DNA of 64,000 nt from Lepidodermella squamata (Eukaryota; Animalia; Gastrotricha). The notes beneath the pieces were generated by a model. It was not told the DNA's origin and did no database searches. It saw nothing but the letters and a program-made list of their open reading frames with translations. The position numbers and the translations under genes are program-made. The stretch spans positions 1 to 64,000 of the forward strand of contig JBLDXI010000014.1 in assembly GCA_047495785.1 (NCBI GenBank), written 5' to 3'. Below, piece after piece: positions 1-41,964 of the stretch. The stretch's first letter is position 1. Each line of letters starts with the position of its first letter.

Positions 1-90
1 ATCTCGTGAGAGTTCCCTATCCATATCCCCATCTCTAACCATATCTCTATCTCTATCTCTATCCCTATCTCTATCTCTATCTCTATAGCT
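1..90. repeat. Degenerate ATCTCT/ATCCCT hexamer microsatellite
   Basis: Runs of atctct/atccct; a similar run lies at 772-830. Confidence 0.85.
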
Positions 91-165
91 ATAAAATAGA
101 GCAAGGTCAAAGTCCAAGGTCGAATTCTCGCGCCTTAATGCCACGTGGCGCCAGTAGAAGGGAAA

Positions 166-198
166 AAAATGGCGGTGCTACTTCTCTGTTATAAAAGC
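166..198 (+). promoter_or_regulatory. Putative promoter upstream of the hammerhead (AAAATGGCGG YY1-like site and TATAAAAG box)
   Basis: Both motifs lie ~70-100 nt upstream of the ribozyme core; motif match only. Confidence 0.3.
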
Positions 199-251
199 AC
201 ACTAAAAACTGCATTGAAATCATTCATCCAGCTTTTATTTCTAGCAAAGAA

Positions 252-321
252 AGCAACGAAAGTCACTGATGAGCCTGCTACCCACAGGCGAAACCGGTCT
301 GACGTTTTTTCGGGTGTTGCT
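252..321 (+). ncRNA. Minimal type I hammerhead ribozyme (Penelope-like element/retrozyme type)
   Basis: GTCA-CTGATGA-GCCTG-ctaccca-CAGGC-GAAA-CCGG-TC-TGAC. Intact core, stem II GCCTG/CAGGC, palindromic minimal stem III ACCGGT, stem I GTCA/TGAC extended by AGCAAC/GTTGCT. Predicted cleavage after C299 (GUC). Confidence 0.9.
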
Positions 322-412
322 ATTTGTCATTAATGATCACTGTTTACTTTGTGTTTGCTTATTATTTTCGATTAACCACATTGAGAGCCTTGCAAAGGCT
401 GCTATTGGTATC

Positions 413-503
413 TGCTTCCCTTCAAGGGTGGCCTTTCCAGTCATGCTTCCCTATATGGGTTGCCTTTTGTAATTTGCTTCCCTATGTGGGTGGCTTTTCC
501 AAA
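413..503. repeat. 3 x 31-bp imperfect tandem repeat
   Basis: TGCTTCCCT....GGGTKGCYTTT units start at 413, 444 and 475. Confidence 0.85.
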
Positions 504-771
504 TGTTTGGTAAGCTGTAACCATCGACCTACCTACCAGAGATTTACGAGATGGTAATAAACGAATTTACAATTGTGGCTCATTGAATGAAGCCAAAAGG
601 GAAAGGATTGAACGCGTTGTTGAGACATGAGGCTTGATAAATCGAATCTTTATCACGACCTCATTTCATCCCTACATCAGAAGTGTACCCATTCAAGACG
701 GTAATTGAGTTCTTGCTAGTGAATAGCACAGTGTCATGTCAGAGGCGGTTAAAACCGTGAATTTAACCTGC

Positions 772-830
772 ACCTCTATCTCCATCTCCATCTCCATCTC
801 TATCCTATCCCTATCCCTATCCCTATCCTC
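772..830. repeat. ATCTCC/ATCCCT hexamer run (telomere-variant-like)
   Basis: CCCTAT differs from CCCTAA by one base and has the same strand polarity as the true tracts. Confidence 0.8.
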
Positions 831-930
831 GGATAGGGCTAAAGCTATTGAAATACAGGCCTGGCTCTCTAGTAGCATTAGAGCTAACTGCCGGGGTGCT
901 TAGGCTACCTGTCTGGTAATTCTCTCCTAA

Positions 931-979
931 CTAACCCTAACCCTAACCCTAACCCTAACCCTAACCCTAACCCTAACCC
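931..979. repeat. Telomeric tract (CCCTAA)~8
   Basis: Perfect CCCTAA units. Confidence 0.98.
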
Positions 980-1660
980 AGCAGTTGCCTTTTGGGTTTC
1001 CTATTGGATTAGCGTGTTCGCCTACAACTTTTGAGTTTTTCTGGCTTTTAACTTGACCATTCAGGTCGCCCAGAATTATAATTTTACCTGACTTAGTCAC
1101 CAATCTATTGTATTCCAGCTGTAAATCAGAAATAAATTTGTCCAGTAATTTCGTGTCATTCGCCGCGGGTGCATAGACTACTATGACGCTGAAGGTCTCA
1201 CGATAGATTTTTAGCCTGGCCGACATTAATCGGTCGCTAACAAAATTTATTGATGTGACTTTGATAAATTTACATTTTTTTACGTACAATCCTGTCCCAG
1301 AACGGGCCGTCGCACCGTCATCCAGGCCACAATAATAAAAAATTCCAGAACCAAGGTTGATTGAGCCTTTCCCTTTCATACGATGCTCTTGCACGGCTAC
1401 CACGTGAAAATTTGCAAATTCATCATCCATCTCCCAATTTTTGTCTTTTTCGGTTCTAATATTTAGTGTTGCCAACAAAATCAATCTAAATAATTCATAA
1501 GCTTGGTGGCTACGAAGGTTCTTTTTGTTGCGACGTCTTTTAGCAGATCGTTCGCCTACCTGTTCATCTTCATCTGATCTCTCGTCGTTTCCTGTCTTGC
1601 ATTGATCAGAAAGTGTCAACAAAGGTTCGAAACAGTTTTTAGTATCCACCGGTGTGTTGT
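980..1660 (-). pseudogene. ORF2 AP-endonuclease N-terminal part, truncated by TTAGGG repeats
   Basis: LATLNIR, VAVQEH, GTGLYV, SDRLM, VVYAP, ILGDLNGQV and VVGEH..N.KG motifs; the frame then reads VRVRVR; the C-terminal SDH motif is absent. Confidence 0.88.
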
Positions 1661-2604
1661 TGTTGTGCGTTGTAGTTCGGCGTTGGCGGCGCGTGTTCGT
1701 TTCGTCGGTTGTCGCGTGCCATGCGCGGGTTGAAAAACTTGTTTTTGTTGTTATTGTTGCGTACGGGCGGCGCACGTGGTTGCACTGGTGCCGGGCACTG
1801 GCGCCAGTAATGACCTGGAGCATTGCAATTGAAGCACGTGCCAGCACGTGCCATCTGGTTAGTATGTTGTTGTTGCTGATTCTGCTGTCTGTTGGCCTGG
1901 TTTCCGCGATTGACCTCATTTCCGCCATTGTTGTGGACATCCTCGGGGGCCTGTCGATGTTCTTGACTACCCGGGTATTGTGAGCCACGACGGTTGTTAA
2001 CGAACGGCCGATCGACGGTCGCCGCCTCTGGCTTGATCCATGCTTTCTTTCGTGAATTGTAGAAAACCTCGGTTTTTCCATCTTTCACAATTCTGTTTCC
2101 TTGGATTTTCAGTTCCGCTTTGTCTGGGCGGTTTTCGATGTAACTCTTCGCTTCGTTTCGCACTTCTCGCTGATGGAACGAATAGTAGGGTTTCGCAAAA
2201 TGAGGCTTTTCCCATCGCAAGGAGATAGCATCGAGGACCCGCTTCGCATGGGATTGCGAATGGAACGTGACTCGATAAGTGGTCTTGCCCAGACGCTCGA
2301 AAACATCGAATTCCACGTCTTCAAGCAAATCATCAAGGACGTCAAAGATCTCCTCATCGGTAGCGTTCTCTGCGAAGCCCCCAATCACCAGCGACTTGCT
2401 GGCATCCGCCAATTCCAGCTGATGAAGCCGTCGACTGTGCATCGACAGCTCCTCCTCGAGCTTCGCCTTGCTCTCGTAGAGCTTGGCCACCTCCAAAGTT
2501 AGCCGAGAGTACAGCTGGTACCGCTTTTTCCAGTCAGTTGTTGAGTCGCCCTGCTCCATTGCCATGTCCATGGCCATCAGCTCGTCGATGATAGTTGTTG
2601 CCAT
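1639..2604 (-). CDS. Retrotransposon ORF1 (coiled coil, RRM-like segment, CCHC zinc knuckle)
   Basis: CFNCNAPGHYWRQC knuckle; SLVIGGFAE...RLG...VTF pattern typical of LINE ORF1; likely start ATG 2604 (upstream in-frame ATG at 2760). Confidence 0.85.
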   Translation of the reverse strand: MATTIIDELMAMDMAMEQGDSTTDWKKRYQLYSRLTLEVAKLYESKAKLEEELSMHSRRLHQLELADASKSLVIGGFAENATDEEIFDVLDDLLEDVEFDVFERLGKTTYRVTFHSQSHAKRVLDAISLRWEKPHFAKPYYSFHQREVRNEAKSYIENRPDKAELKIQGNRIVKDGKTEVFYNSRKKAWIKPEAATVDRPFVNNRRGSQYPGSQEHRQAPEDVHNNGGNEVNRGNQANRQQNQQQQHTNQMARAGTCFNCNAPGHYWRQCPAPVQPRAPPVRNNNNKNKFFNPRMARDNRRNEHAPPTPNYNAQQQHTGGY

Positions 2605-3011
2605 GATAAATACGTATGTAAAAATCAAATTAAATACTTTGAATCCTCGGAAAATGGAAATTGCACGCCGATTCGGTCTTGGCCAACACAAATTTGCCCT
2701 CTCAGCTATCGCAGTCGAATTCGCCTTAGAATTCGAAAATCGATACGCAGATATTTTCATTCATTGTATTCATTCTTTGAATACAAATTTTGTCTGAGTT
2801 CCTTTGAGCCATTTGTCGGGAATATTTATCGGATCTCAGTATTATCGCGGAGTGGTTAGGAACACATAATTTTTGTGATGAAGAATCATCATAAACATGA
2901 AAATGATGCTCATCTTGGATCCCTATGGTGGAGTAATGGTAGGGCCCGGTTTGACTCTCAATAAAACGAGAGGCCCCGGTTTGCAGCTCGTCTGTATTAA
3001 ACTATTACCAA

Positions 3012-3120
3012 TAACCCTAACCCTAACCCTAACCCTAACCCTAGGCTACCTGTCTCTGTCTGGTATTTTCCCTAAACTAACCCTAACCCTAACCCTAACC
3101 CTAACCCTAACCCTAACCCC
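3012..3120. repeat. Two telomeric tracts (3012-3043, 3070-3120) separated by a 26-nt non-telomeric insert
   Basis: (CCCTAA)~5 + GGCTACCTGTCTCTGTCTGGTATTTT + (CCCTAA)~8. Confidence 0.97.
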
Positions 3121-3240
3121 ACCACCTCGGACAGAATATCAGGGCCCAAGCTATCAAACGCCTTTCGTACGTCAAGGAAAGCAACAGCCGCCTTCAGACT
3201 CGCGTTGCAGGCAGCTAACAGATCGTCAATTGTGGGGGCA
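3121..3240 (-). pseudogene. Short non-LTR reverse transcriptase fragment ending in TTAGGG repeats
   Basis: AAVAFLDVRKAFDSLGPDIL matches the RT D..KAFD.V motif; the frame then reads GLGLGL. Confidence 0.75.
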
Positions 3241-4727
3241 CGGTCGTGCCCTCCCGAAGAATGGAGAGAGGGTTGGGAAAGAACAGCGGCGAAAAGAGAA
3301 ATGGCCAGGGAAGAGGAAAAAAGGCACACCGTCAGCCCCCTATATAATAAGGTCTACGCAGAATAGAAGAAAATTGGCAAAAGTGTACCTACTTTGGGTG
3401 TTTATTACAAGGCCTTAGCAGAAGATATTTTCGAAAATAATTATACCAGCATGTAGCTAATATCCCCAGCTGTGTAATGGTATAATTTATTTGCAAAGAT
3501 TCTACAGGTAACTTGTTGTTTTGTGTCACCGCGCGAAGTCAATTTTTACGTGGTTCCTTAAAAAGTGTGGACCCCCCCCCCTCAGTGTGTAAACGCAAAG
3601 ACCGAGCTAGCGGTTGAGTGAGGGGACGGATTTCACACCGACGAAAAATTTAAAATTTTGGATTTATAATTAAAATATAAAAATATAAATATTTCCATAA
3701 ATTAATTTTTGTTTTGGCGCTATTTTATTCAAACTTGCAACTTGCGCGCGCGCTTCGAAACTTGCAACTCCTTGTCAACTCAGACACAGTTCCAGGTTCG
3801 TTCTTTGAGGGAACCGCTGGTTTTCCATCGAGTTTCTCGCAAACAGACATTAAACCTTACGTCATAAGAGGCAACTTTGCTTCGTATAACAACAAAATAT
3901 TCATCAATTTCGTAATAAGTCATCAAGTCCTATTTTGCATGCGACGGCATCATGGGGACCGACGAAGCCTGCACTACGGACTTTAACTTCTTCAAGAACT
4001 TACGTAATAGGTACTCACTTATGTGCATATGAATGGTTTGATAAAATTGAAATATGGAGTTTCTGTGAAGAATTATCGAAATGTGGAAGAAAGAAGTGAA
4101 ACACAGTGATGTCGCCGGTTTATCGAGGGTTGAATTCTGAACCCCTCTCAATTATTATCACATGCAAGATAGCGCAGCATAATTCCTGATGTAATTAATG
4201 TCGAATAAGCCGGGGATGTCAGGGATCATCGCTGCTTCAACGAAGGGGCGTCGTCCATCCAGGGGGTATCGCTCTCCTATCTGTTCCTTGTATCGGATAT
4301 CGGAAGGAGTTACTGTGCCTTGATATCATAGGTTGTATCCAATATCCAAATTTGTGAGAATCTTAGACCATCTTCAGACTGATTATCGTAAAAATACCTT
4401 CAACTAAGCTCGCATCACAAGCTATTAACTGGGTATATTCGAAGAAATATGGTTCATTGAGCACCAAAACCGACCCGAGAAGCAAATAATACACAACCCA
4501 GCGAGCGTGCGCAGCACGCGAGCGCTAAATTCGAGATCGCCCTCTCTGCAAAAAGTCGTTCTTCGACACTAAAAATGTAAGGTTTCGCTTGAGTTCGCAT
4601 ACCTTGATCTCGATTTGTCATGCTCAAATTCGCGACAGCGAAATTGTAACACAGACAGCTTCAAGATTAGAAGAAAATGCGGACAGCTGCAAATAGCAAG
4701 GCAACTAGCTTCATGAAACTGCATCAA

Positions 4728-12100: not shown

Positions 12101-13769
12101 GAGCTAGAGCTTAGTCGTCAGCTGCTCTCTTCACAAGAAAGCAAAGCAAAAAGAGAAAGGGAAGAGTTGACTGGCAGATTCGCAGAACAACTAAAAACTC
12201 TGGTAATTAAATATTTACATAATAATCCCGACCTTGCTTAACTGCTACCAAGTTGATGCCATAATGCGGTATGGAAGTTTCTAAAAACTCTTACTTGCTA
12301 CTTGCTGATGACCCTATGAAGAAAGCTTTGCTCTAGAGAGGTTAACAATTCACCTAATTTTTTGTCATATAAATGATGCAGTTACGTGCACTTGACAAAG
12401 TTATCTTCATTGAAACATTAGGCTAGTATACTGTTGCTACAGATTTAACTGTGGATTCCTCTGTTTTTGGCAATAGGAATCTCAATTGAAGCTTGACATC
12501 GAACAAGTTCGAAGTGATCAAAGAAGAGAGTATGAAGAACGATACAAAGTCAACGAAGAGCAGATAAAGCAGGCGCTGTGGAGGGAAAGTGATGCGCGCT
12601 TAGCCAAGCTTCAAGAAAGGTATGATATAATAAGGACTAATTGATCGAATATTCGATCATCTTTTACTGGTTAGCTTTTCTTTGGAGCGATATCGTTATG
12701 AGGATAAGTTGAAGCATATATCTGCCGAACTAGAGCAGTACGCAAATCAGAATGAAGACCTCAATAGATACAAAGATCAAGCTGATCTCAAGGTTTGTTC
12801 TTTCCAGAGTTAGGCAGATTTGTTAATATTACCTCCGGCTGTTATTAATAGATCAAAGAGTATGAAGCAAAATACAGCGGGTACGACGCGAAACTGAAGA
12901 AACTGGAAAGTTTGTTGCGCCAGGTTCACGAAGAAAAATTGGGAGAAACAGCTCGGGCGACCAAGGCTGAAAACGACGTCTCTGTTTTGCAGACTATCAT
13001 CGAGAGACAGTGTGATGAACGATTGAGGTTAATGGAAGCCCTGAATAATGTTAAAGGAGAAATTATCAAGGCCAAATTACCCCAAGGTATTCTGGTGAAC
13101 CGCTATTTTTGCGTTATTCATTAACATTTGTCGTTTCTTTTTGTAGATGTCATGGACGAATTGATGCTCAAATTATCCAGTGGCATGCAGAATATGGTGC
13201 GGAGTAGCCAGGCTAGAATAGAAATACCAACTGGTGGTTATGGCACACAGCGTCAGCGAGCGTGGTCGTTCGACAATCAAGGCGATTCTGCTATCCATAT
13301 GCCATCTGCTGCCTCTGATGGTGCGAATGATTCTAATATGTATGAAAATAAAAAATCTGCGGAAAGGAATTTGAAGGCAGACCACCCGCCTAAGGCGTTG
13401 AAAGTCGAATCTGCTGCAGCTCAGTTGGAAAGACGCCGCCTGCTTTACACTAACGGCGCACTGACATTACCACCTCTAGACATGAGCATTACATCAGCGT
13501 CTTCCTCGCCAATCAACCAGCTTAATCAACGTAACCTAAGTCAGACCAGTATTTCAACAAACCACGATGATGCAGCATATCCTCGAACCAAAGAAAGCAA
13601 GGTCTACAACCCTTCGTCTACAATACGTCTACAACCCCTCGGAACCCAAAAGTCAATGTCTGAGTCAAATGTCGGTAGCGTTATCAACAGCAGTCAACGG
13701 CCACCAATCGGGAAATTGTCTGGAACGGATTTCCGAATGAAAATTGCCGCTGTCCTGAGTCGAAAATGA
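9101..13769 (+). CDS. LEKR1: Leucine-, glutamate- and lysine-rich protein 1 (coiled coil), 11 exons
   Basis: HPLPEE...VCQYCGVSYLILHE N-terminus and LQTIIERQCDERLRLMEAL motif. Exons 9101-9247, 9306-9433, 9484-9591, 9801-9946, 10008-10221, 11874-12021, 12071-12202, 12477-12619, 12675-12792, 12852-13086, 13147-13769; all GT-AG and in phase. Confidence 0.88.
11711..11832. repeat. Short dispersed repeat with subterminal inverted repeat and hairpin (HINE/DINE-1-like); copies near 8690-8760, 17503-17600 and 30895-30955
   Basis: CCCAAAGCGGA...TCCGCTTYGGG-AGYGGA followed by a purine-rich tail. Confidence 0.65.
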
Positions 13770-16664: not shown

Positions 16665-19364
16665 ATTTGTTGCCAGGCGAATTCGAAGCGGCCCCTGTTA
16701 ACCCGTACGATTTTCGCCTCGTCGAAATTGGCCGCGGAAGAACAGATGAATGAAACGCGCTGTCGAGTTCATTTTTAGGCCGCGGTGAAAATCTCCACTC
16801 TCCCGTCTTCGTCCAGCTGTTGAAATTTTCGAAGATGCGGAAGTTGGGTCGGTGGTGCTTATCCTGAAGGCGGTTGATAACGGCGTTGGGTTCAACGGCC
16901 TGGTAACGTATCAAATCGCGGAGGGCAACGACGGGTTCTACTTCAATATGTCAACGTTCACCGGAGAGTTGGTGCTAGCCCGGCCGTTGGATGCCGAAAC
17001 TCACGACTCATTCACGCTGCAAATCATCGCGTCAGATCTGGGCGAAATTCCGAGAAAAACGAAATTAACCATTGATTCAAAGGTTGATGACGTCAACGAT
17101 GTTCGGCCGATTTTTCGCGAATCCAGCTATTCCGTCGAGGTTCCCGAGGCGTCGCCAGTAGGCACCCGCCTGCTAGTAGTCCGGGCTGAAGATTCGGACC
17201 GAGATGCGGAAAATGCGCAAGTCCGTTATTCGTTACTTGGCGAAAATTCGCTGGATAGCTACTTCACAATCGGCCCTCTGGATGGTGTAGTCACCCTGAA
17301 ACCTGAATCAACCCCTAGATCGCGAGAAGTATCGGCTGCGAGTGATGGCAGCTATCTTTCAGTCGATGATTTGTTGATCAGACCTAATGAAATAATGTCA
17401 GGCGCAGCAGCAGAAGCAGAGCACACGCGCGCAATATTGCTCTTTCTAGAAACAGCAACGCACTTTTACATGTTAGTGAAGGGTAATTAAACAGCAAAAC
17501 ATCCCAAACCGGCGGAGAATTCTAAAGAATCAGAGAGAATTTCTAGAATAAAGAATCAAAGAATCCGCTTTGGGAGCGGACGTGAAAGAAGAAAGAAGCG
17601 GTGCTTTTTCAGGCATTTTTCCACAAATTTCACGGAAAATTATAGCGAATACCAAATTATTAAGCTGATGTGTTAGTAATAGAACTTCAAAGTTTAGTTT
17701 GGCGCGGTTTTAACACTTCGATTTACTCAAATTACTGGTTTCAGTACCAAATAACTGAAACCGTTAATCTCTATTCCCTTATCATTTTCGCACCCGTTCG
17801 CTCCCGCTCCTAGTGCTCGTGTAAACCGAGGGCGAGGCTATTACGAGTTGAGTGTATTTGCGTTGCAAATTTTTTATTTTGAGAGCGTAAAAGCTCCTCT
17901 AGAATCGGCTCTAGAATAGACTCTAGAATCGGCAACAAATGATGGTTCTCCCCCCACACTTGTCATTGCGAAAATCGCCCATCTGATCAGAGCATGGCAG
18001 GTACACGGGAGTGAAGTTTATTCCCTGGTTTTTCTCATGGCGAACGGAATAAAGAGGATGTAATGTAATGTAACAAAAAGCTCCAAACACATTATCAAGT
18101 TACTGTTTGTTATTCAAGGAGAGTTTGATTGAGAAAATGTGTTAACGAGAAAAGTCAGCTGCTGCGGCCGATGGCCGAAGTAAAATTTACTGTCCGTATG
18201 GCAGCGCATCCGTTGTTGGTGATGCCCAGAGTTGCCCAGAAAGCCGGTAAAAACACATTAGCCGGTAAAAACCCTTAGTTCTGAATTTTGCGTTGAGGTG
18301 AAATGATCGTTTGTCGATTTTTCGTTAACTTCAGTACGAACAATGACGCGAAGAACAATCACTGAGCATCGAAACGTCGCAATAATTAACAATAAAAAGA
18401 AGCTACGAAACTTCTTCGCGTTATTGTTCTTACGCAAAATTCTCCCGCTTAAATTGAGCAGATTATTTTCAGCCTAAAAAAACTTGCAGCTAGGTTCACC
18501 TCTTTGCTGGCTGGCTGTTATTTGTTCGATTCCGATCACGTAGCAGTTTGCTTGTCCGTTCACGTTGTGTCAAAAAGTTGAAGTCCGTTCATGTGCCAAA
18601 TAGCCGCTCACCTCCCTTCCTCAGTTTCATGCCGATATGGGTAATGAAATCATTCTGTCACTGAGAGAGCTGGAATTTTTAACCGAAGCTGGAATTAGCT
18701 AGAAATTTGCTCTAACACGTGGAAAGAGGTGGAAATATTCGCTTTGAAAAATGCCAGCTCTCTCCAGGCGACGTTCAACTCGACGAAATAGTGCAGGTCC
18801 GTAAAACACGTAAAATGATCTGGAGAAAGCTGGACTCAAGATGATCATAGAAATCGACCAATAAGTGAATACTCTATGGCTAGCCAAGGAGAAATAAATT
18901 CCCCCCGATCTGGAACCCCGAGTGAGTTTGGCGCAGCCAAACGAATCGAGGGTTCGATTGAATCCCCATTGATCCCCAGAAAGCCGGTAAACCAATTTTC
19001 GGCCGCTTCTGTCAACTACGAATTTTTTGTAAAAGAAGCCATCTGAGATACGATACACGGTTCGATTTGTTACCGGCTCAATTTTTTCGCTCAATTTTTG
19101 TTATACCACATACTTTGAATTTTGTATTGTCCGCATTTGTTGTCATTATTTCGTCTTTGCGTTTTTTCTATATATAATTTGGTCGTATTTATTATACACT
19201 GCTTGGCATGATGTTCACCTGATTACCCCGGTCAGTTTCGCCAAAAATTAGATCTTCGTATATTTGTGTACACCAACCACCAACAAATGTCTTGGTCAAA
19301 ATAACAACTTCGACTACCTATATTTATTTGTTGCCAGCTTACACTCTCTCTGATAATTTTCTGA

Positions 19365-38190: not shown

Positions 38191-39436
38191 GCAACTTCCG
38201 ATGCAACTTCCGCCACCGCGGAATAATCGCGCGGGTTTTCCTCTCTAATCTTTTCAACCAATTTAATGTGTATATTTGCGCAAAAATATATATTGTTATT
38301 TTAAATATGTGTCTTACAATAGGCAATAAGAAGTCTTGAGAAAAAATATATGGTTTGCGGGGTAACAAAAGTATGTATGGGGGATGAGTCCTGGGAACAA
38401 GCTACGTTCAAGTTAGCTGCGGGGTTGCTAAAGCAGCTGAAGCACAAAGCACACAAAGCATGAAGCCCATCCTGAACTCAACATGAAGCTCTCTGACCGC
38501 CTTCCCTGTACCTGCACTAATCACGCCTAACCCTACCCTATGCATGTTTTTCTGTCACCAACCGAAGTTTCTTGGTCGGGAGAAGGTTTTTAGCCACCGC
38601 AATAGATGGGCTTGCAGCCTACTGCCGTCGGGAATGCCATAAATGTACGATATTATACTATATACTTTTTATTCGCGTTAATTGCGCCATTTCAAATTCT
38701 AATTTTAGTAGAGCCGCCTGAAACCTTGAAGCTTGAAGATTCTGCTACTCGTCCATCCTGCCTTCTGGAGCTTCCTGTTTGCTGACCTGTTTCTCTTCAC
38801 ACCTAAATTATTCAGTAGCTACGAGTCGCTATTGGTCTAATTGGTCTGTATCTTATTAAGAATCTTATCTATATTATATTGTTGTAGACGTTGGACGTAC
38901 TGCAACTCTTTCATTTAGCGGAACCCTTTCGTGAATTCATACACAATAACCTTTACAGTCCCACATTATTACTTTAAGATTGTAGATTGTCACGTCTAGT
39001 AGCATCAATTTTCGATCATCAATTTGATGACATAAATTATTGATTATTGGCTCTTGAGTTCACAGGAACCAGGACCGATAATTCGCCACTACCTTTCTCA
39101 CCGCGCCATCAAGAGGGTTATTTTTCCGCTTTCAACTGAGACATTCAACTTAAAACGACTTCGAGACCCTATTGAACTCTTGAAAGGAGAAATTCCTTAA
39201 ATAATGCTGTGCTTAGGTTATTTTTCAGCTCGAATGTTTACTGTAACATCCTGAACCCACCACAAATTGTGCACGTTTGTATTTTCTAAGTTGATTTTGT
39301 TTGATTGGATATTCGGCAAATTTCTTTCCGCAAGAAGGGAAACCCAATTTTTTACGTCATATGCGATCAATTTTTTTTAGGTGAAGCATATTTATTAATT
39401 TTTCTCATCCGAATTGCGATAATAGTCGCAAATATT

Positions 39437-41964
39437 ATGTCGGATGAAGCCGCTGACGTAGGAGGAGACTTGAATGGCAAAGAGAACGTTAACATCATTG
39501 TATTCACCAAATCAGTGCTGTTGCAGCGTGAAATTCATGGATTTTTGATTGGCGGAGAGAAAAGATTACTTTTCTCCGAAATTAATGCCGAACTCTGCCG
39601 CCGAGGTGTTCAGCAGTTGGACATCTTGGAAAAATTGAAGGCTCTGCAGCTACAACTTACAGAGACCACGGCGGAGCAGCGTGATGTTATAGCTTCACAA
39701 TTGGGTCTAAAAGATTCGTCATCGCTCGATGAGCAATACTTAATTCGGCAGACCGATGCAGAGCGATTATGTGGAGCGGTTATTCGTTGCCAAAGAGTCG
39801 CGTCTGACAGCGATTTGACCGAAAACACTTTCAAGGTTCAACATGAAATATTCGGAAAGTCTCGCGGGCTATTCATCCCGGAGCTTTACAATAGCTCCAA
39901 TGCCGAGTGTATTACTTGCATTCAATGCAGAGCACTCTTATCTCCTCAAGATTTTGTTCGCCACAATCACTCGCCGCCCAAGAATCAGGCACGTCATGTT
40001 TCAGAGTATGTCGGTAATGCTTATTTCTCTATTCCGCTCCAATACAGGTACGGCATTGGGGTCTGGAGTCGACGCGGTGGTGGCGCTATGTCTTTGTTGC
40101 CAAGGATCAGGAAAATCGCGAAGTATACCAGCGGCTTCTCGACGAACTTAAGCAGCGGTTTCCACCATCAGCCAGTGAAAACGTACGTTTCTCTGTATTT
40201 CGCTCTGCTTTTCATCCTCTGGCTGTTAGCGAGGCAGCTTTAATTAATTTTATTGCGGGCGTGGGTCGATTCATCAGGCAATAGCGGCGCTTTTTACGGT
40301 GATAGTAAGCAAACGTATGTGTGTTCGCACGTGCTGCCGAGCGTATGGCCGGCAGAGCTATTGCGCAAGTGGCCTTCTGGCGAACTCAGCCATAGCTCGG
40401 CTAGCCGGCGTCGCGCCGGTTGGCGTTGCATAACGCGCCTTAGTAGTAGCTACCGCGTGTCCCAGAGCGTTCACGACTATGTCTGTCTAATGTTCATTGT
40501 TACGCAACCGACCTTAGGTCACAAACTTTCCAATCAAGCCGACGGCGACTTCGGACTACAAGACCGCGTCGCAGACGACGGCGTCCATCTTCAGCCAGCT
40601 CGTCGCGCTCCAGGACTCAGTGGATGCGAATAAGCCACCAGCCGCAATCACATTCGAATCATTGTTCAACCAACAACGGCAAAGTTTTCTTGAAAGGTAC
40701 TAATGAATGATTTACAAATGTGATATAAACAGAATCGACAATTTTTGCGTTATTAAGGTTATGTGGATATGATACGACAACTAATTCACGAACGCCAGAT
40801 AACGGCCGATCGACTTCGTTTGCCGAAATTATGGCAAGCGCCATGGCTAGTGCGGCGAAGTACTTGCAAAATCCAGCGGCGTCGGCCGTGTCGACCCCCT
40901 GTGATTCTCAGCCATCATCGGCTTTTGTCCCTCCGCCAAATGTGCGGCTGCAAGACATGTTCGGCCGTCAGTCAGCGTGGCGGAGGACCGACCTCGGTGA
41001 AGATGACGACGACCTGAGCGTCAAACGGCGCAAACTCGACGACTCGGCGTCACCGCTTTCGTCGGCAGCGTCCTCAGCCGACAACGTCAACAACAGCGCA
41101 AATATTTCGGCGTATTCTGTGAGCGAGGCGGCGCTAGCGACGGTGGCCGCCATCAGCTCGCACGCCAAATTGCAATCGGAAGCGGCGGCGGTCATGGCGC
41201 TTCCGCCACAGATCCTCCTCGGCGACTCCCGCCCACATCCGGTTATGGCGGCCGTGTCGCGTTCGAAGGACGACGAGTCAGGTGAGGATGAGGATGACGC
41301 AACAACCGAGAAGCTGCTACGCTCGCAGCTCGGCGATGAGGTGTCCGTGCTGAAAAGAGCGTTTGCCAAGCAGCTGCTGGCTACTTTGGGTGGACTTCTC
41401 GCTGAGGAAGGCTCTACTCTGGTTGCAAAACTGAGCGAGGCACCTTTGGACTCGACTTTGGACGATACGCTCCTCGACGAGTTCCGTCAGCTTCGGGCGA
41501 AGCACGCGGCTCAAACAGCAGCGGCGGAGCAGACGCGACCAGCGGCGCCGAAACACATGACTGTGATGGGCAAGTACCTCGGTGAATTGCAGGACGAGAA
41601 GGCTGACTTGGAAGCGCGGGTACGATCACTGACGAGCGAATTGTCCCGCGCTAAGCAGGAGCAGAATGCCATGTCGCTGCGTCTCATGGAAAAAGAGCGC
41701 GAGTTGAATGAAATGCGCGCGGTGTTGCAGGCCTTCGTGCAGCCTGGATCGCAGCAGCGCCAGCAGCAGTCGAGCAGCGCATTTCTGACGCCAGCGACTA
41801 CCTCTGCGTTAACTACCGCCCTCTCCCCGATGCTTGACCCCCGGCGGGCGCTTCTCATGATGATGGCGCAAGAGAAATTCGGCGTAAACTACGCGACACG
41901 ATCAGCCGAGGAGCTGGACGCGGCGCTTTCGATGGTTGCTAGTGCGACAACTATGTCCTCGTGA
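39437..41964 (+). CDS. SKI: Ski/SnoN family corepressor, 4 exons, ~690 aa
   Basis: DHD (GGEKRL...TDAERLC), SAND-like Smad4-binding domain (HEIFGK.RG..PELY...CITC..C...F..H.H...HWG), C-terminal coiled coil. Exons 39437-39988, 40048-40182, 40518-40696, 40758-41964. Confidence 0.88.

Follow-up and report, generated by a model that had tools for sequence, protein, structure and literature searches.

A short motif beside telomeric repeats in an animal genome, very probably the conserved 3' terminus of endonuclease-free PLEs and their non-coding passengers

At the start of the contig analysed here, the same short motif lies twice beside CCCTAA repeats, the second time as a tiny insert inside the repeat array, which raises the question of what kind of sequence ends on telomeric repeats in this way. 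The window, i.e., the whole stretch of 64,000 nucleotides under analysis, corresponds to G000:C14:1-64000 and begins with the contig, in a genome of 121 Mb and 151 contigs. The host is an animal, as judged by a Ski/Sno homologue at window 39305-40243 (c-SKI SMAD-binding domain, E=9e-20), and it encodes a TERT RNA-binding domain on contig C21 (63.9 bits). The three CCCTAA tracts within the first 3.2 kb of the window all belong to the plus strand, which identifies the minus strand as the telomeric G-strand and places the chromosome tip to the left of position 1. According to our analysis, the motif is very probably the conserved 3' terminus of endonuclease-free Penelope-like retroelements (PLEs), and of non-coding passengers, that copy themselves onto TTAGGG chromosome ends. 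The features are collected in Table 1.

Table 1. Features of the first 3.1 kb of the window, and tails of the element families.
Feature	Position	Strand	Remarks
A-type non-coding passenger	1-930	+	Truncated at the contig start; 3' end toward the chromosome interior
Type I hammerhead ribozyme	253-320	+	Manual fold and covariation
Hammerhead parts	266-273; 289-294; 293-298		CUGAUGAG core; CGAAAC; palindromic ACCGGU helix III
Conserved 3' box	890-921	+	GCCGGGG, short hairpin, CYGTCTGGTAWT; the motif as first described starts inside, at 901
A-family tail, then docking site	922-941	+	Docking site CTAACCCTAAC at 931-941
Telomere tract	931-979	+	8.2 CTAACC units; cap (on the G-strand) of the LINE broken at 980
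Non-LTR retrotransposon (LINE)	980-2762	-	Broken at 980, healed with TTAGGG repeats
LINE ORF1	2604-1639	-	With CCHC knuckle
LINE ORF2, start	1553-981	-	With half an AP-endonuclease domain
G-type telomere-attaching family	2763-3011	+	Last 249 nt; CGTCTGTATT box related to the 3' box; joins CCCTAA directly
Telomere tract	3012-3043	+	5.3 units; separates the G-type copy from the tiny insert
Tiny insert	3042-3076	+	B-family element reduced to its last 35 nt, beginning in the hairpin loop; private CTGTCT duplication
Docking site and innermost telomere tract	3077-3119	+	7.2 units; unique sequence from 3120
A-family tail			TCTCTCCTAA-CTAA
B-family tail			TTTCCCTAAA-CTAA
C-family tail			AACCTAACCCAA
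D-family tail			CACATTGAT-CTAA

The preliminary description had reported the motif at window 901-937 and 3042-3083, and both copies are present there. In a global alignment 34 of 44 columns are identical; the second copy has a duplication of 6 nt (CTGTCT), and the tails differ slightly. Perfect CCCTAA repeats follow both copies, and the second copy is also preceded by repeats. The irregular first repeat unit noted at both sites is real and is encoded by the element, each family having its own fixed tail. The pattern GGCTACCTGTCT...CTAACCC was matched 35 times in the 121-Mb genome and never in the form of a reversed-pattern control, a recurrence far beyond chance. The idea would have lost its ground had the motif been absent elsewhere, yet it stands at telomere junctions on contigs C13, C15, C20, C21, C32, C38, C46, C54 and C57. 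Matches to the box pattern in metagenome contigs (at least 120 loci) were set aside as chance, as among the matches listed none had telomere-like sequence after the box. Short CCCTAA tracts as such are widespread in the genome: there are 752 matches of at least four units, many of them deep within contigs (e.g. C2:1173501, C3:208005), and these interstitial tracts may be old chromosome ends or internal insertions of telomere-attaching elements.

The motif, about 35 bases long, is the distal half of a "3' box" of about 50 nt. The box consists, in this order, of GCCGGGG, a short hairpin, CYGTCTGGTAWT and a family-specific tail of 8-15 nt, and is followed by CTAACCCTAAC. Genome-wide, the full box (GCCGGGGT...GTCTGGTA) has 30 matches, on contigs C13, C14, C15, C20, C21, C32, C38, C46, C54 and C57, as opposed to none in the control. 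The boxes occur in stacks, which on contigs of known length (C38 and C54 excluded) are all no more than about 30 kb away from a contig end. On these contigs 28 boxes can be oriented, and 25 of them have the 5' end toward the contig end; the three oppositely oriented boxes lie within inverted terminal duplications on C20, C32 and C21, a known habit of PLEs (PMC8557442). Fourteen of the 30 boxes continue into CCCTAA tracts, whose length varies from 3 to more than 26 units. The other 16 are located at joints between units, where exactly CTAACCCTAAC is followed by a 5' leader conserved between families; nine of these belong to the array on C32 (eight "-" joints and an inverted "+" copy). At least six box variants (A, B, B', C, D and F) are distinguished, and the two window copies represent different ones, A at 890-941 and B, reduced to its last 35 nt, at 3042-3076. 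Another family has a 3' end (...GGACCGTAGTAACCCTACTAA) that joins CCCTAA tracts without the GTCTGGTA box, at L041 (C20) 12381-12416 and 16854-16883 and at L037 7636-7653.

At 16 joints exactly CTAACCCTAAC separates the motif from unique sequence, so that the RNA of the elements carries an internal, template-like docking site. In family A this site lies outside ORF1, with a stop directly after it in the frame of the ATG at C13:4004. The box itself is nearly unchanged across families whose reverse transcriptases (RTs) are 58-61% identical, and it is kept in the non-coding passengers too. On the strength of this conservation the box is most likely a handle by which the RT recognizes its template beside the docking site. 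Folding energies of the box are no better than those of shuffled sequences (z -0.5 to -1.7), and it shows almost no covariation, being too invariant apart from a few stem changes in variants D and F, so that the argument for a handle is one from conservation. We regard these stem changes as suggestive. RNAalifold and single-sequence folds agree on a fold with the G-rich half of the box paired with the docking site, and we hypothesize that the RNA may adopt this structure.

The 3' box terminates several retroelement families, which comprise RT-encoding units of 6 kb as well as non-coding passengers. An autonomous unit of 6.2 kb at C13:3895-10126 encodes ORF1 (139 aa), an RT (844 aa) and ORF3 (357 aa). 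The RT ORF of this unit matches only RVT_1 in Pfam, and at E<=0.01 none of the RT ORFs of C13, C57 and C9 showed a GIY-YIG endonuclease. A protein of the same genome with both RVT_1 and GIY-YIG, i.e., a canonical EN+ PLE, aligns with the C13 RT over 425 aa (E=1e-25), including the DKG, LPKxHK and YxDD motifs, and the C13 RT stops 46 residues past the aligned region. A word search with the whole RT returned one protein and with the RT core 24 proteins; the relatives in the database carry DUF8422, RVT_1 and HTH_animal, and several of them GIY-YIG. The three closest relatives (39-50% identity), which come from other samples, all have the ORF1-RT-ORF3 layout, and one of them has the same ribozyme. 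Within the genome, family A has an RT that is 58-61% identical to those of families B and C (C57). A PDB sequence search with the RT gave weak matches to group II intron and retron RTs (E about 0.2) and none to TERT.

The copies of these elements are variable in form. They include a partial tandem of 1.45 units on C13 and fold-back (inverted) copies at C32 and C20, and their 5' truncation points range from 35 nt in the window and about 75 nt on C38 to RT residue 130 on C13. Taken with the motifs and similarity of the RT and with a hammerhead in the terminal region that has a palindromic helix III, these partial tandems, inverted copies and 5' truncations would place the elements among the PLEs. 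The RT ORFs without an endonuclease, the reverse-complement telomeric repeats at the 3' end, the 5' end pointing toward the tip and the chromosome-terminal location would further assign them to the EN-deficient telomeric PLEs. The preliminary description had contrasted a single-copy telomerase RNA locus with multicopy element ends, and it is the latter that were found, with 30 full boxes in several variants and RT-encoding elements upstream.

The first 930 nt of the window are 95% identical to a 1605-bp unit that is arrayed at the end of C32. Window 1-930 contains no ORF of at least 80 aa, and the longest ATG-ORF in the doubled C32 unit has 111 aa. With the autonomous C13 element this sequence shares only its first 39 nt, the ribozyme region (84%) and its last 72 nt (98.6%), which suggests that the passenger retains just the parts needed for copying. 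Being non-coding, equipped with a hammerhead and ending like its autonomous partner, window 1-930 can be described as a putative retrozyme-like passenger. The array on C32 (G000:C32:4488100-4500940, loci L002-L009) consists of eight such units that are 100% identical. These units are joined by the 11-mer, and the distal end of the array is a fold-back at a CTGGTA microhomology; the arrangement fits rolling-circle or multimer-templated reverse transcription, a very recent amplification or an assembly effect. The eight identical units are the sole hint that the passenger may have a circular RNA intermediate.

Further repeats were observed in and around the passenger. The contig opens with ATCTCGTGAGAGT (window 1-13), and the same string is found beside true CCCTAA repeats at G000:C33:2937773-2937801 and within the terminal telomere tract of C13, as an insert of 18 nt (L031 1115-1138). 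It looks like the 3' end of another type of telomere-attaching element, and would be a second example of a tiny insert within a repeat array. Telomere-like hexamer arrays (CCCTAT, CTCTAT, CTCCAT) occur inside the passenger at window 14-86 and 774-828. Since C33 has real telomere repeats at the position matching window 14-86 (75% identity), these arrays are possibly fossil telomere tracts in a composite unit; they may also be a functional C-rich feature. At window 414-510, a unit of about 31 nt that includes a small CCC...GGG hairpin occurs three times in tandem; these units are also present in the autonomous C13 element (83-87% identity).

The hammerhead of the passenger is predicted to cut after C299. 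Across six family variants all 66 of 66 cells of its helices are paired, and five of the 11 pairs have changed on both sides, as compared with 18-33% of cells paired in slid controls. Searches against Rfam returned no hammerhead, telomerase RNA or other relevant family, neither for the whole window at the gathering threshold nor for 1-3200 at E<=10. Between the hammerhead and the docking site downstream of it are 320-870 nt, and it is the separate conserved box that adjoins the repeats. A D-type copy on C20 begins exactly at the first base of helix I of its hammerhead. An E-box palindrome (GCCACGTGGC) followed by a TATA-like box (ATAAAAGC) is located 70-120 nt upstream of the hammerhead (window 140-200), and a similar pair is present in a relative of 50% identity from another sample (last 120 nt of L050); the pair is possibly a conserved promoter.

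The second motif copy had been proposed to be an extremely 5'-truncated element that was capped again at a TA microhomology, and both parts of this proposal agree with our results. Window 3042-3076 matches the tail of the B family on C57 at 36 of 36 positions, the private 6-nt duplication aside, it has repeats on both sides, and it is oriented like all other copies; the TA at 3042-3043 is ambiguous and belongs either to the end of a CCCTA repeat or to the element. It is also not the only very short copy, as about 75 nt of variant C lie inside repeats on C38. The shortness of the insert may reflect either aborted reverse transcription or the erosion of a longer copy, in each case followed by re-capping by telomerase.

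Between the two motif copies lie a G-type copy and a LINE. The G-type copy is 97% identical to a longer copy on C21, with the homology ending at 2763. The LINE seems to be complete at its 5' end, to have inserted in the G-type element and to have been broken later within its AP-endonuclease domain; with 548 candidates in a first-look search, its family is abundant. An earlier view of 2763-3011 as the 5' UTR of a telomere-specific LINE was dropped, as this segment is the 3' end of the plus-strand family G, into which the LINE has inserted. Proximal to the stack, the minus strand of 3120-3329 had been taken for an RT fragment on account of the string FLDVRKAFDS; this was withdrawn, there being no Pfam match and no second genomic copy of 3120-3227.

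Read from the inside outward, the 3.1-kb stack would record five events. A break at 3120 would have been healed with repeats, and a B-type copy would then have been added, of which 35 nt were left and capped again. A G-type copy would have followed. Next, a LINE would have inserted in this G-type copy and the end would have been lost back to 980 and healed, before the A-type passenger was added as the last event. The stack is a readable history of one chromosome end, where loss, healing and the addition of retroelements occurred repeatedly.

In every element the sense strand is on the C-strand, the 3' box and CTAACCCTAAC are joined proximally to CCCTAA repeats, and the 5' end points outward and is cut differently in each copy. 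From this anatomy we infer a cycle of three steps. The site CUAACCCUAAC of the element RNA would pair with the TTAGGG 3' overhang, the RT of the element would extend the overhang by copying the tail, then the box and then the remaining element, and telomerase would add fresh repeats to the resulting end. Priming at the overhang is the published mechanism for EN-minus PLEs, namely Athena and Coprina (PMC8557442, PMC6431247). The enzyme that copies the motif is most likely the TERT-related RT of the element, and not telomerase. The recurrence of the exact 11-mer at 16 joints in long-diverged families suggests that templates longer than one unit are copied. Such copies do exist (1.45 units on C13, eight units in the C32 array), which makes it unlikely that the joints are separate additions onto very short caps.

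An alternative is that recombination or break-induced replication alone has spread subtelomeric blocks of motif and repeats, without ongoing retrotransposition. Subtelomeres readily exchange sequence, and the complete identity of the eight C32 units and the inverted duplications at C20 and C32 could be accounted for in this manner. Exchange of blocks does not explain, however, why tract lengths, truncation points and neighbours differ at nearly all junctions, why several families have only the box in common, why the RT ORFs are intact and the orientation is uniform, or why one fixed terminal nucleotide stands beside the repeats in all copies. We therefore consider recombination as the only agent improbable, and retain the attachment of endonuclease-free PLEs to chromosome ends as the preferred explanation.

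A bolder version of the preferred explanation is that the box and the exact 11-nt CUAACCCUAAC constitute a telomerase-RNA-like module within the RNA of a TERT-sister enzyme, which we regard as a long shot. The G-rich half of the box (GGGGUU..UUAGG), lying on the docking site, may mimic a primer/template pair and be displaced by the real overhang, and the RT of the element might copy the 11-mer repeatedly and itself lay some of the short telomere tracts. We saw no evidence of reiterative copying in the elements, in contrast to telomerase. If true, such a module would be a living intermediate between retrotransposon and telomerase.

It is highly improbable that the short tracts and the tiny insert are an assembly artefact, i.e., noisy telomeric reads mis-joined at a contig end. 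The whole structure does lie within 3.1 kb of the contig start, and the first 393 nt of C13 consist of error-ridden repeats; yet at least ten contigs have the same architecture with clean tracts, the tiny insert is an exact match to the tail of a real family, and a second short copy exists on C38.

The suggestion that the motif is the 5' flank of a telomerase RNA template, exposed by read-through past the template boundary, is rejected as having next to no chance: the 16 places where unique sequence follows the motif after exactly CTAACCCTAAC, a permutation of 11 nt as is typical of TTAGGG templates, and an insert of merely 35 nt within the repeat array, would suit it, but the motif is multicopy, its 30 boxes fall into at least six variants with the two window copies drawn from different ones, longer copies continue upstream for 0.9-6.2 kb into element sequence with RT ORFs, and the window has no match to telomerase RNA in Rfam. 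What stands of this suggestion is the template-like site, which is found in the RNA of the elements themselves.

The PLEs described here are, as judged from their sequence, of the Athena/Coprina kind, which is already known, whereas the host and the form appear to be new. According to PMC8557442 and PMC6431247, Athena and the Terminons have in common with our elements a PLE-type RT without GIY-YIG, several ORFs, head-to-tail chains at chromosome ends with short telomere tracts between the members and 5' ends cut by these tracts, reverse-complement telomeric repeats at the 3' end, a hammerhead and non-coding relatives. The host repeat of Athena is TGTGGG, in contrast to TTAGGG here, and Athena is described as specific to rotifers; the likeness is one of features. 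In the rotifer elements the hammerhead is described as directly adjacent to the repeats (PMC6431247), whereas here it is 320-870 nt upstream and the box of about 50 nt takes the adjacent place; unlike in Athena, the joints between units repeat the docking site as an exact 11-mer. Coprina elements are EN-deficient PLEs that occur in fungi and in other eukaryotes whose telomeres are of the TTAGGG type, and they resemble our elements in being endonuclease-free and telomere-associated and in having short reverse-complement repeats at the 3' end; the host differs, being an animal here, and this likeness too is one of features alone.

The passenger in window 1-930, non-coding and with a hammerhead, is similar to retrozymes (Cervera and de la Pena 2016, 2020) and to the non-autonomous Chlamys elements (PMC8557442). 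As in retrozymes and non-autonomous PLE derivatives, only the termini are common to it and an RT-encoding partner, and its multiple copies are arrayed head to tail. It differs from retrozymes in that it seems to be aimed at telomeres by means of the box and the docking site.

A further analogy can be drawn to the template of telomerase RNA, in that an RNA with CUAACCCUAAC would pair with the G-overhang and be copied by a TERT-related RT. Unlike in telomerase RNA, copying would run far beyond the site, and the RNA is multicopy and encodes its own enzyme. A telomerase RNA would be a single-copy gene with structural domains, whereas we found 30 copies in several variants, with no Rfam match in the window. 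PLE reverse transcriptases are the closest relatives of telomerase, and telomere-attached EN-free PLEs are the main model for the origin of telomerase from a retroelement. In the present animal, elements of this kind occur alongside a working TTAGGG/TERT system, and several families together with their non-coding passengers all retain one short 3' box beside an exact, template-like 11-mer. Box and 11-mer constitute a small and well-defined RNA element that is amenable to in vitro tests. As the general mechanism has already been published, our finding refines the known picture of telomere-attached PLEs without overturning it.
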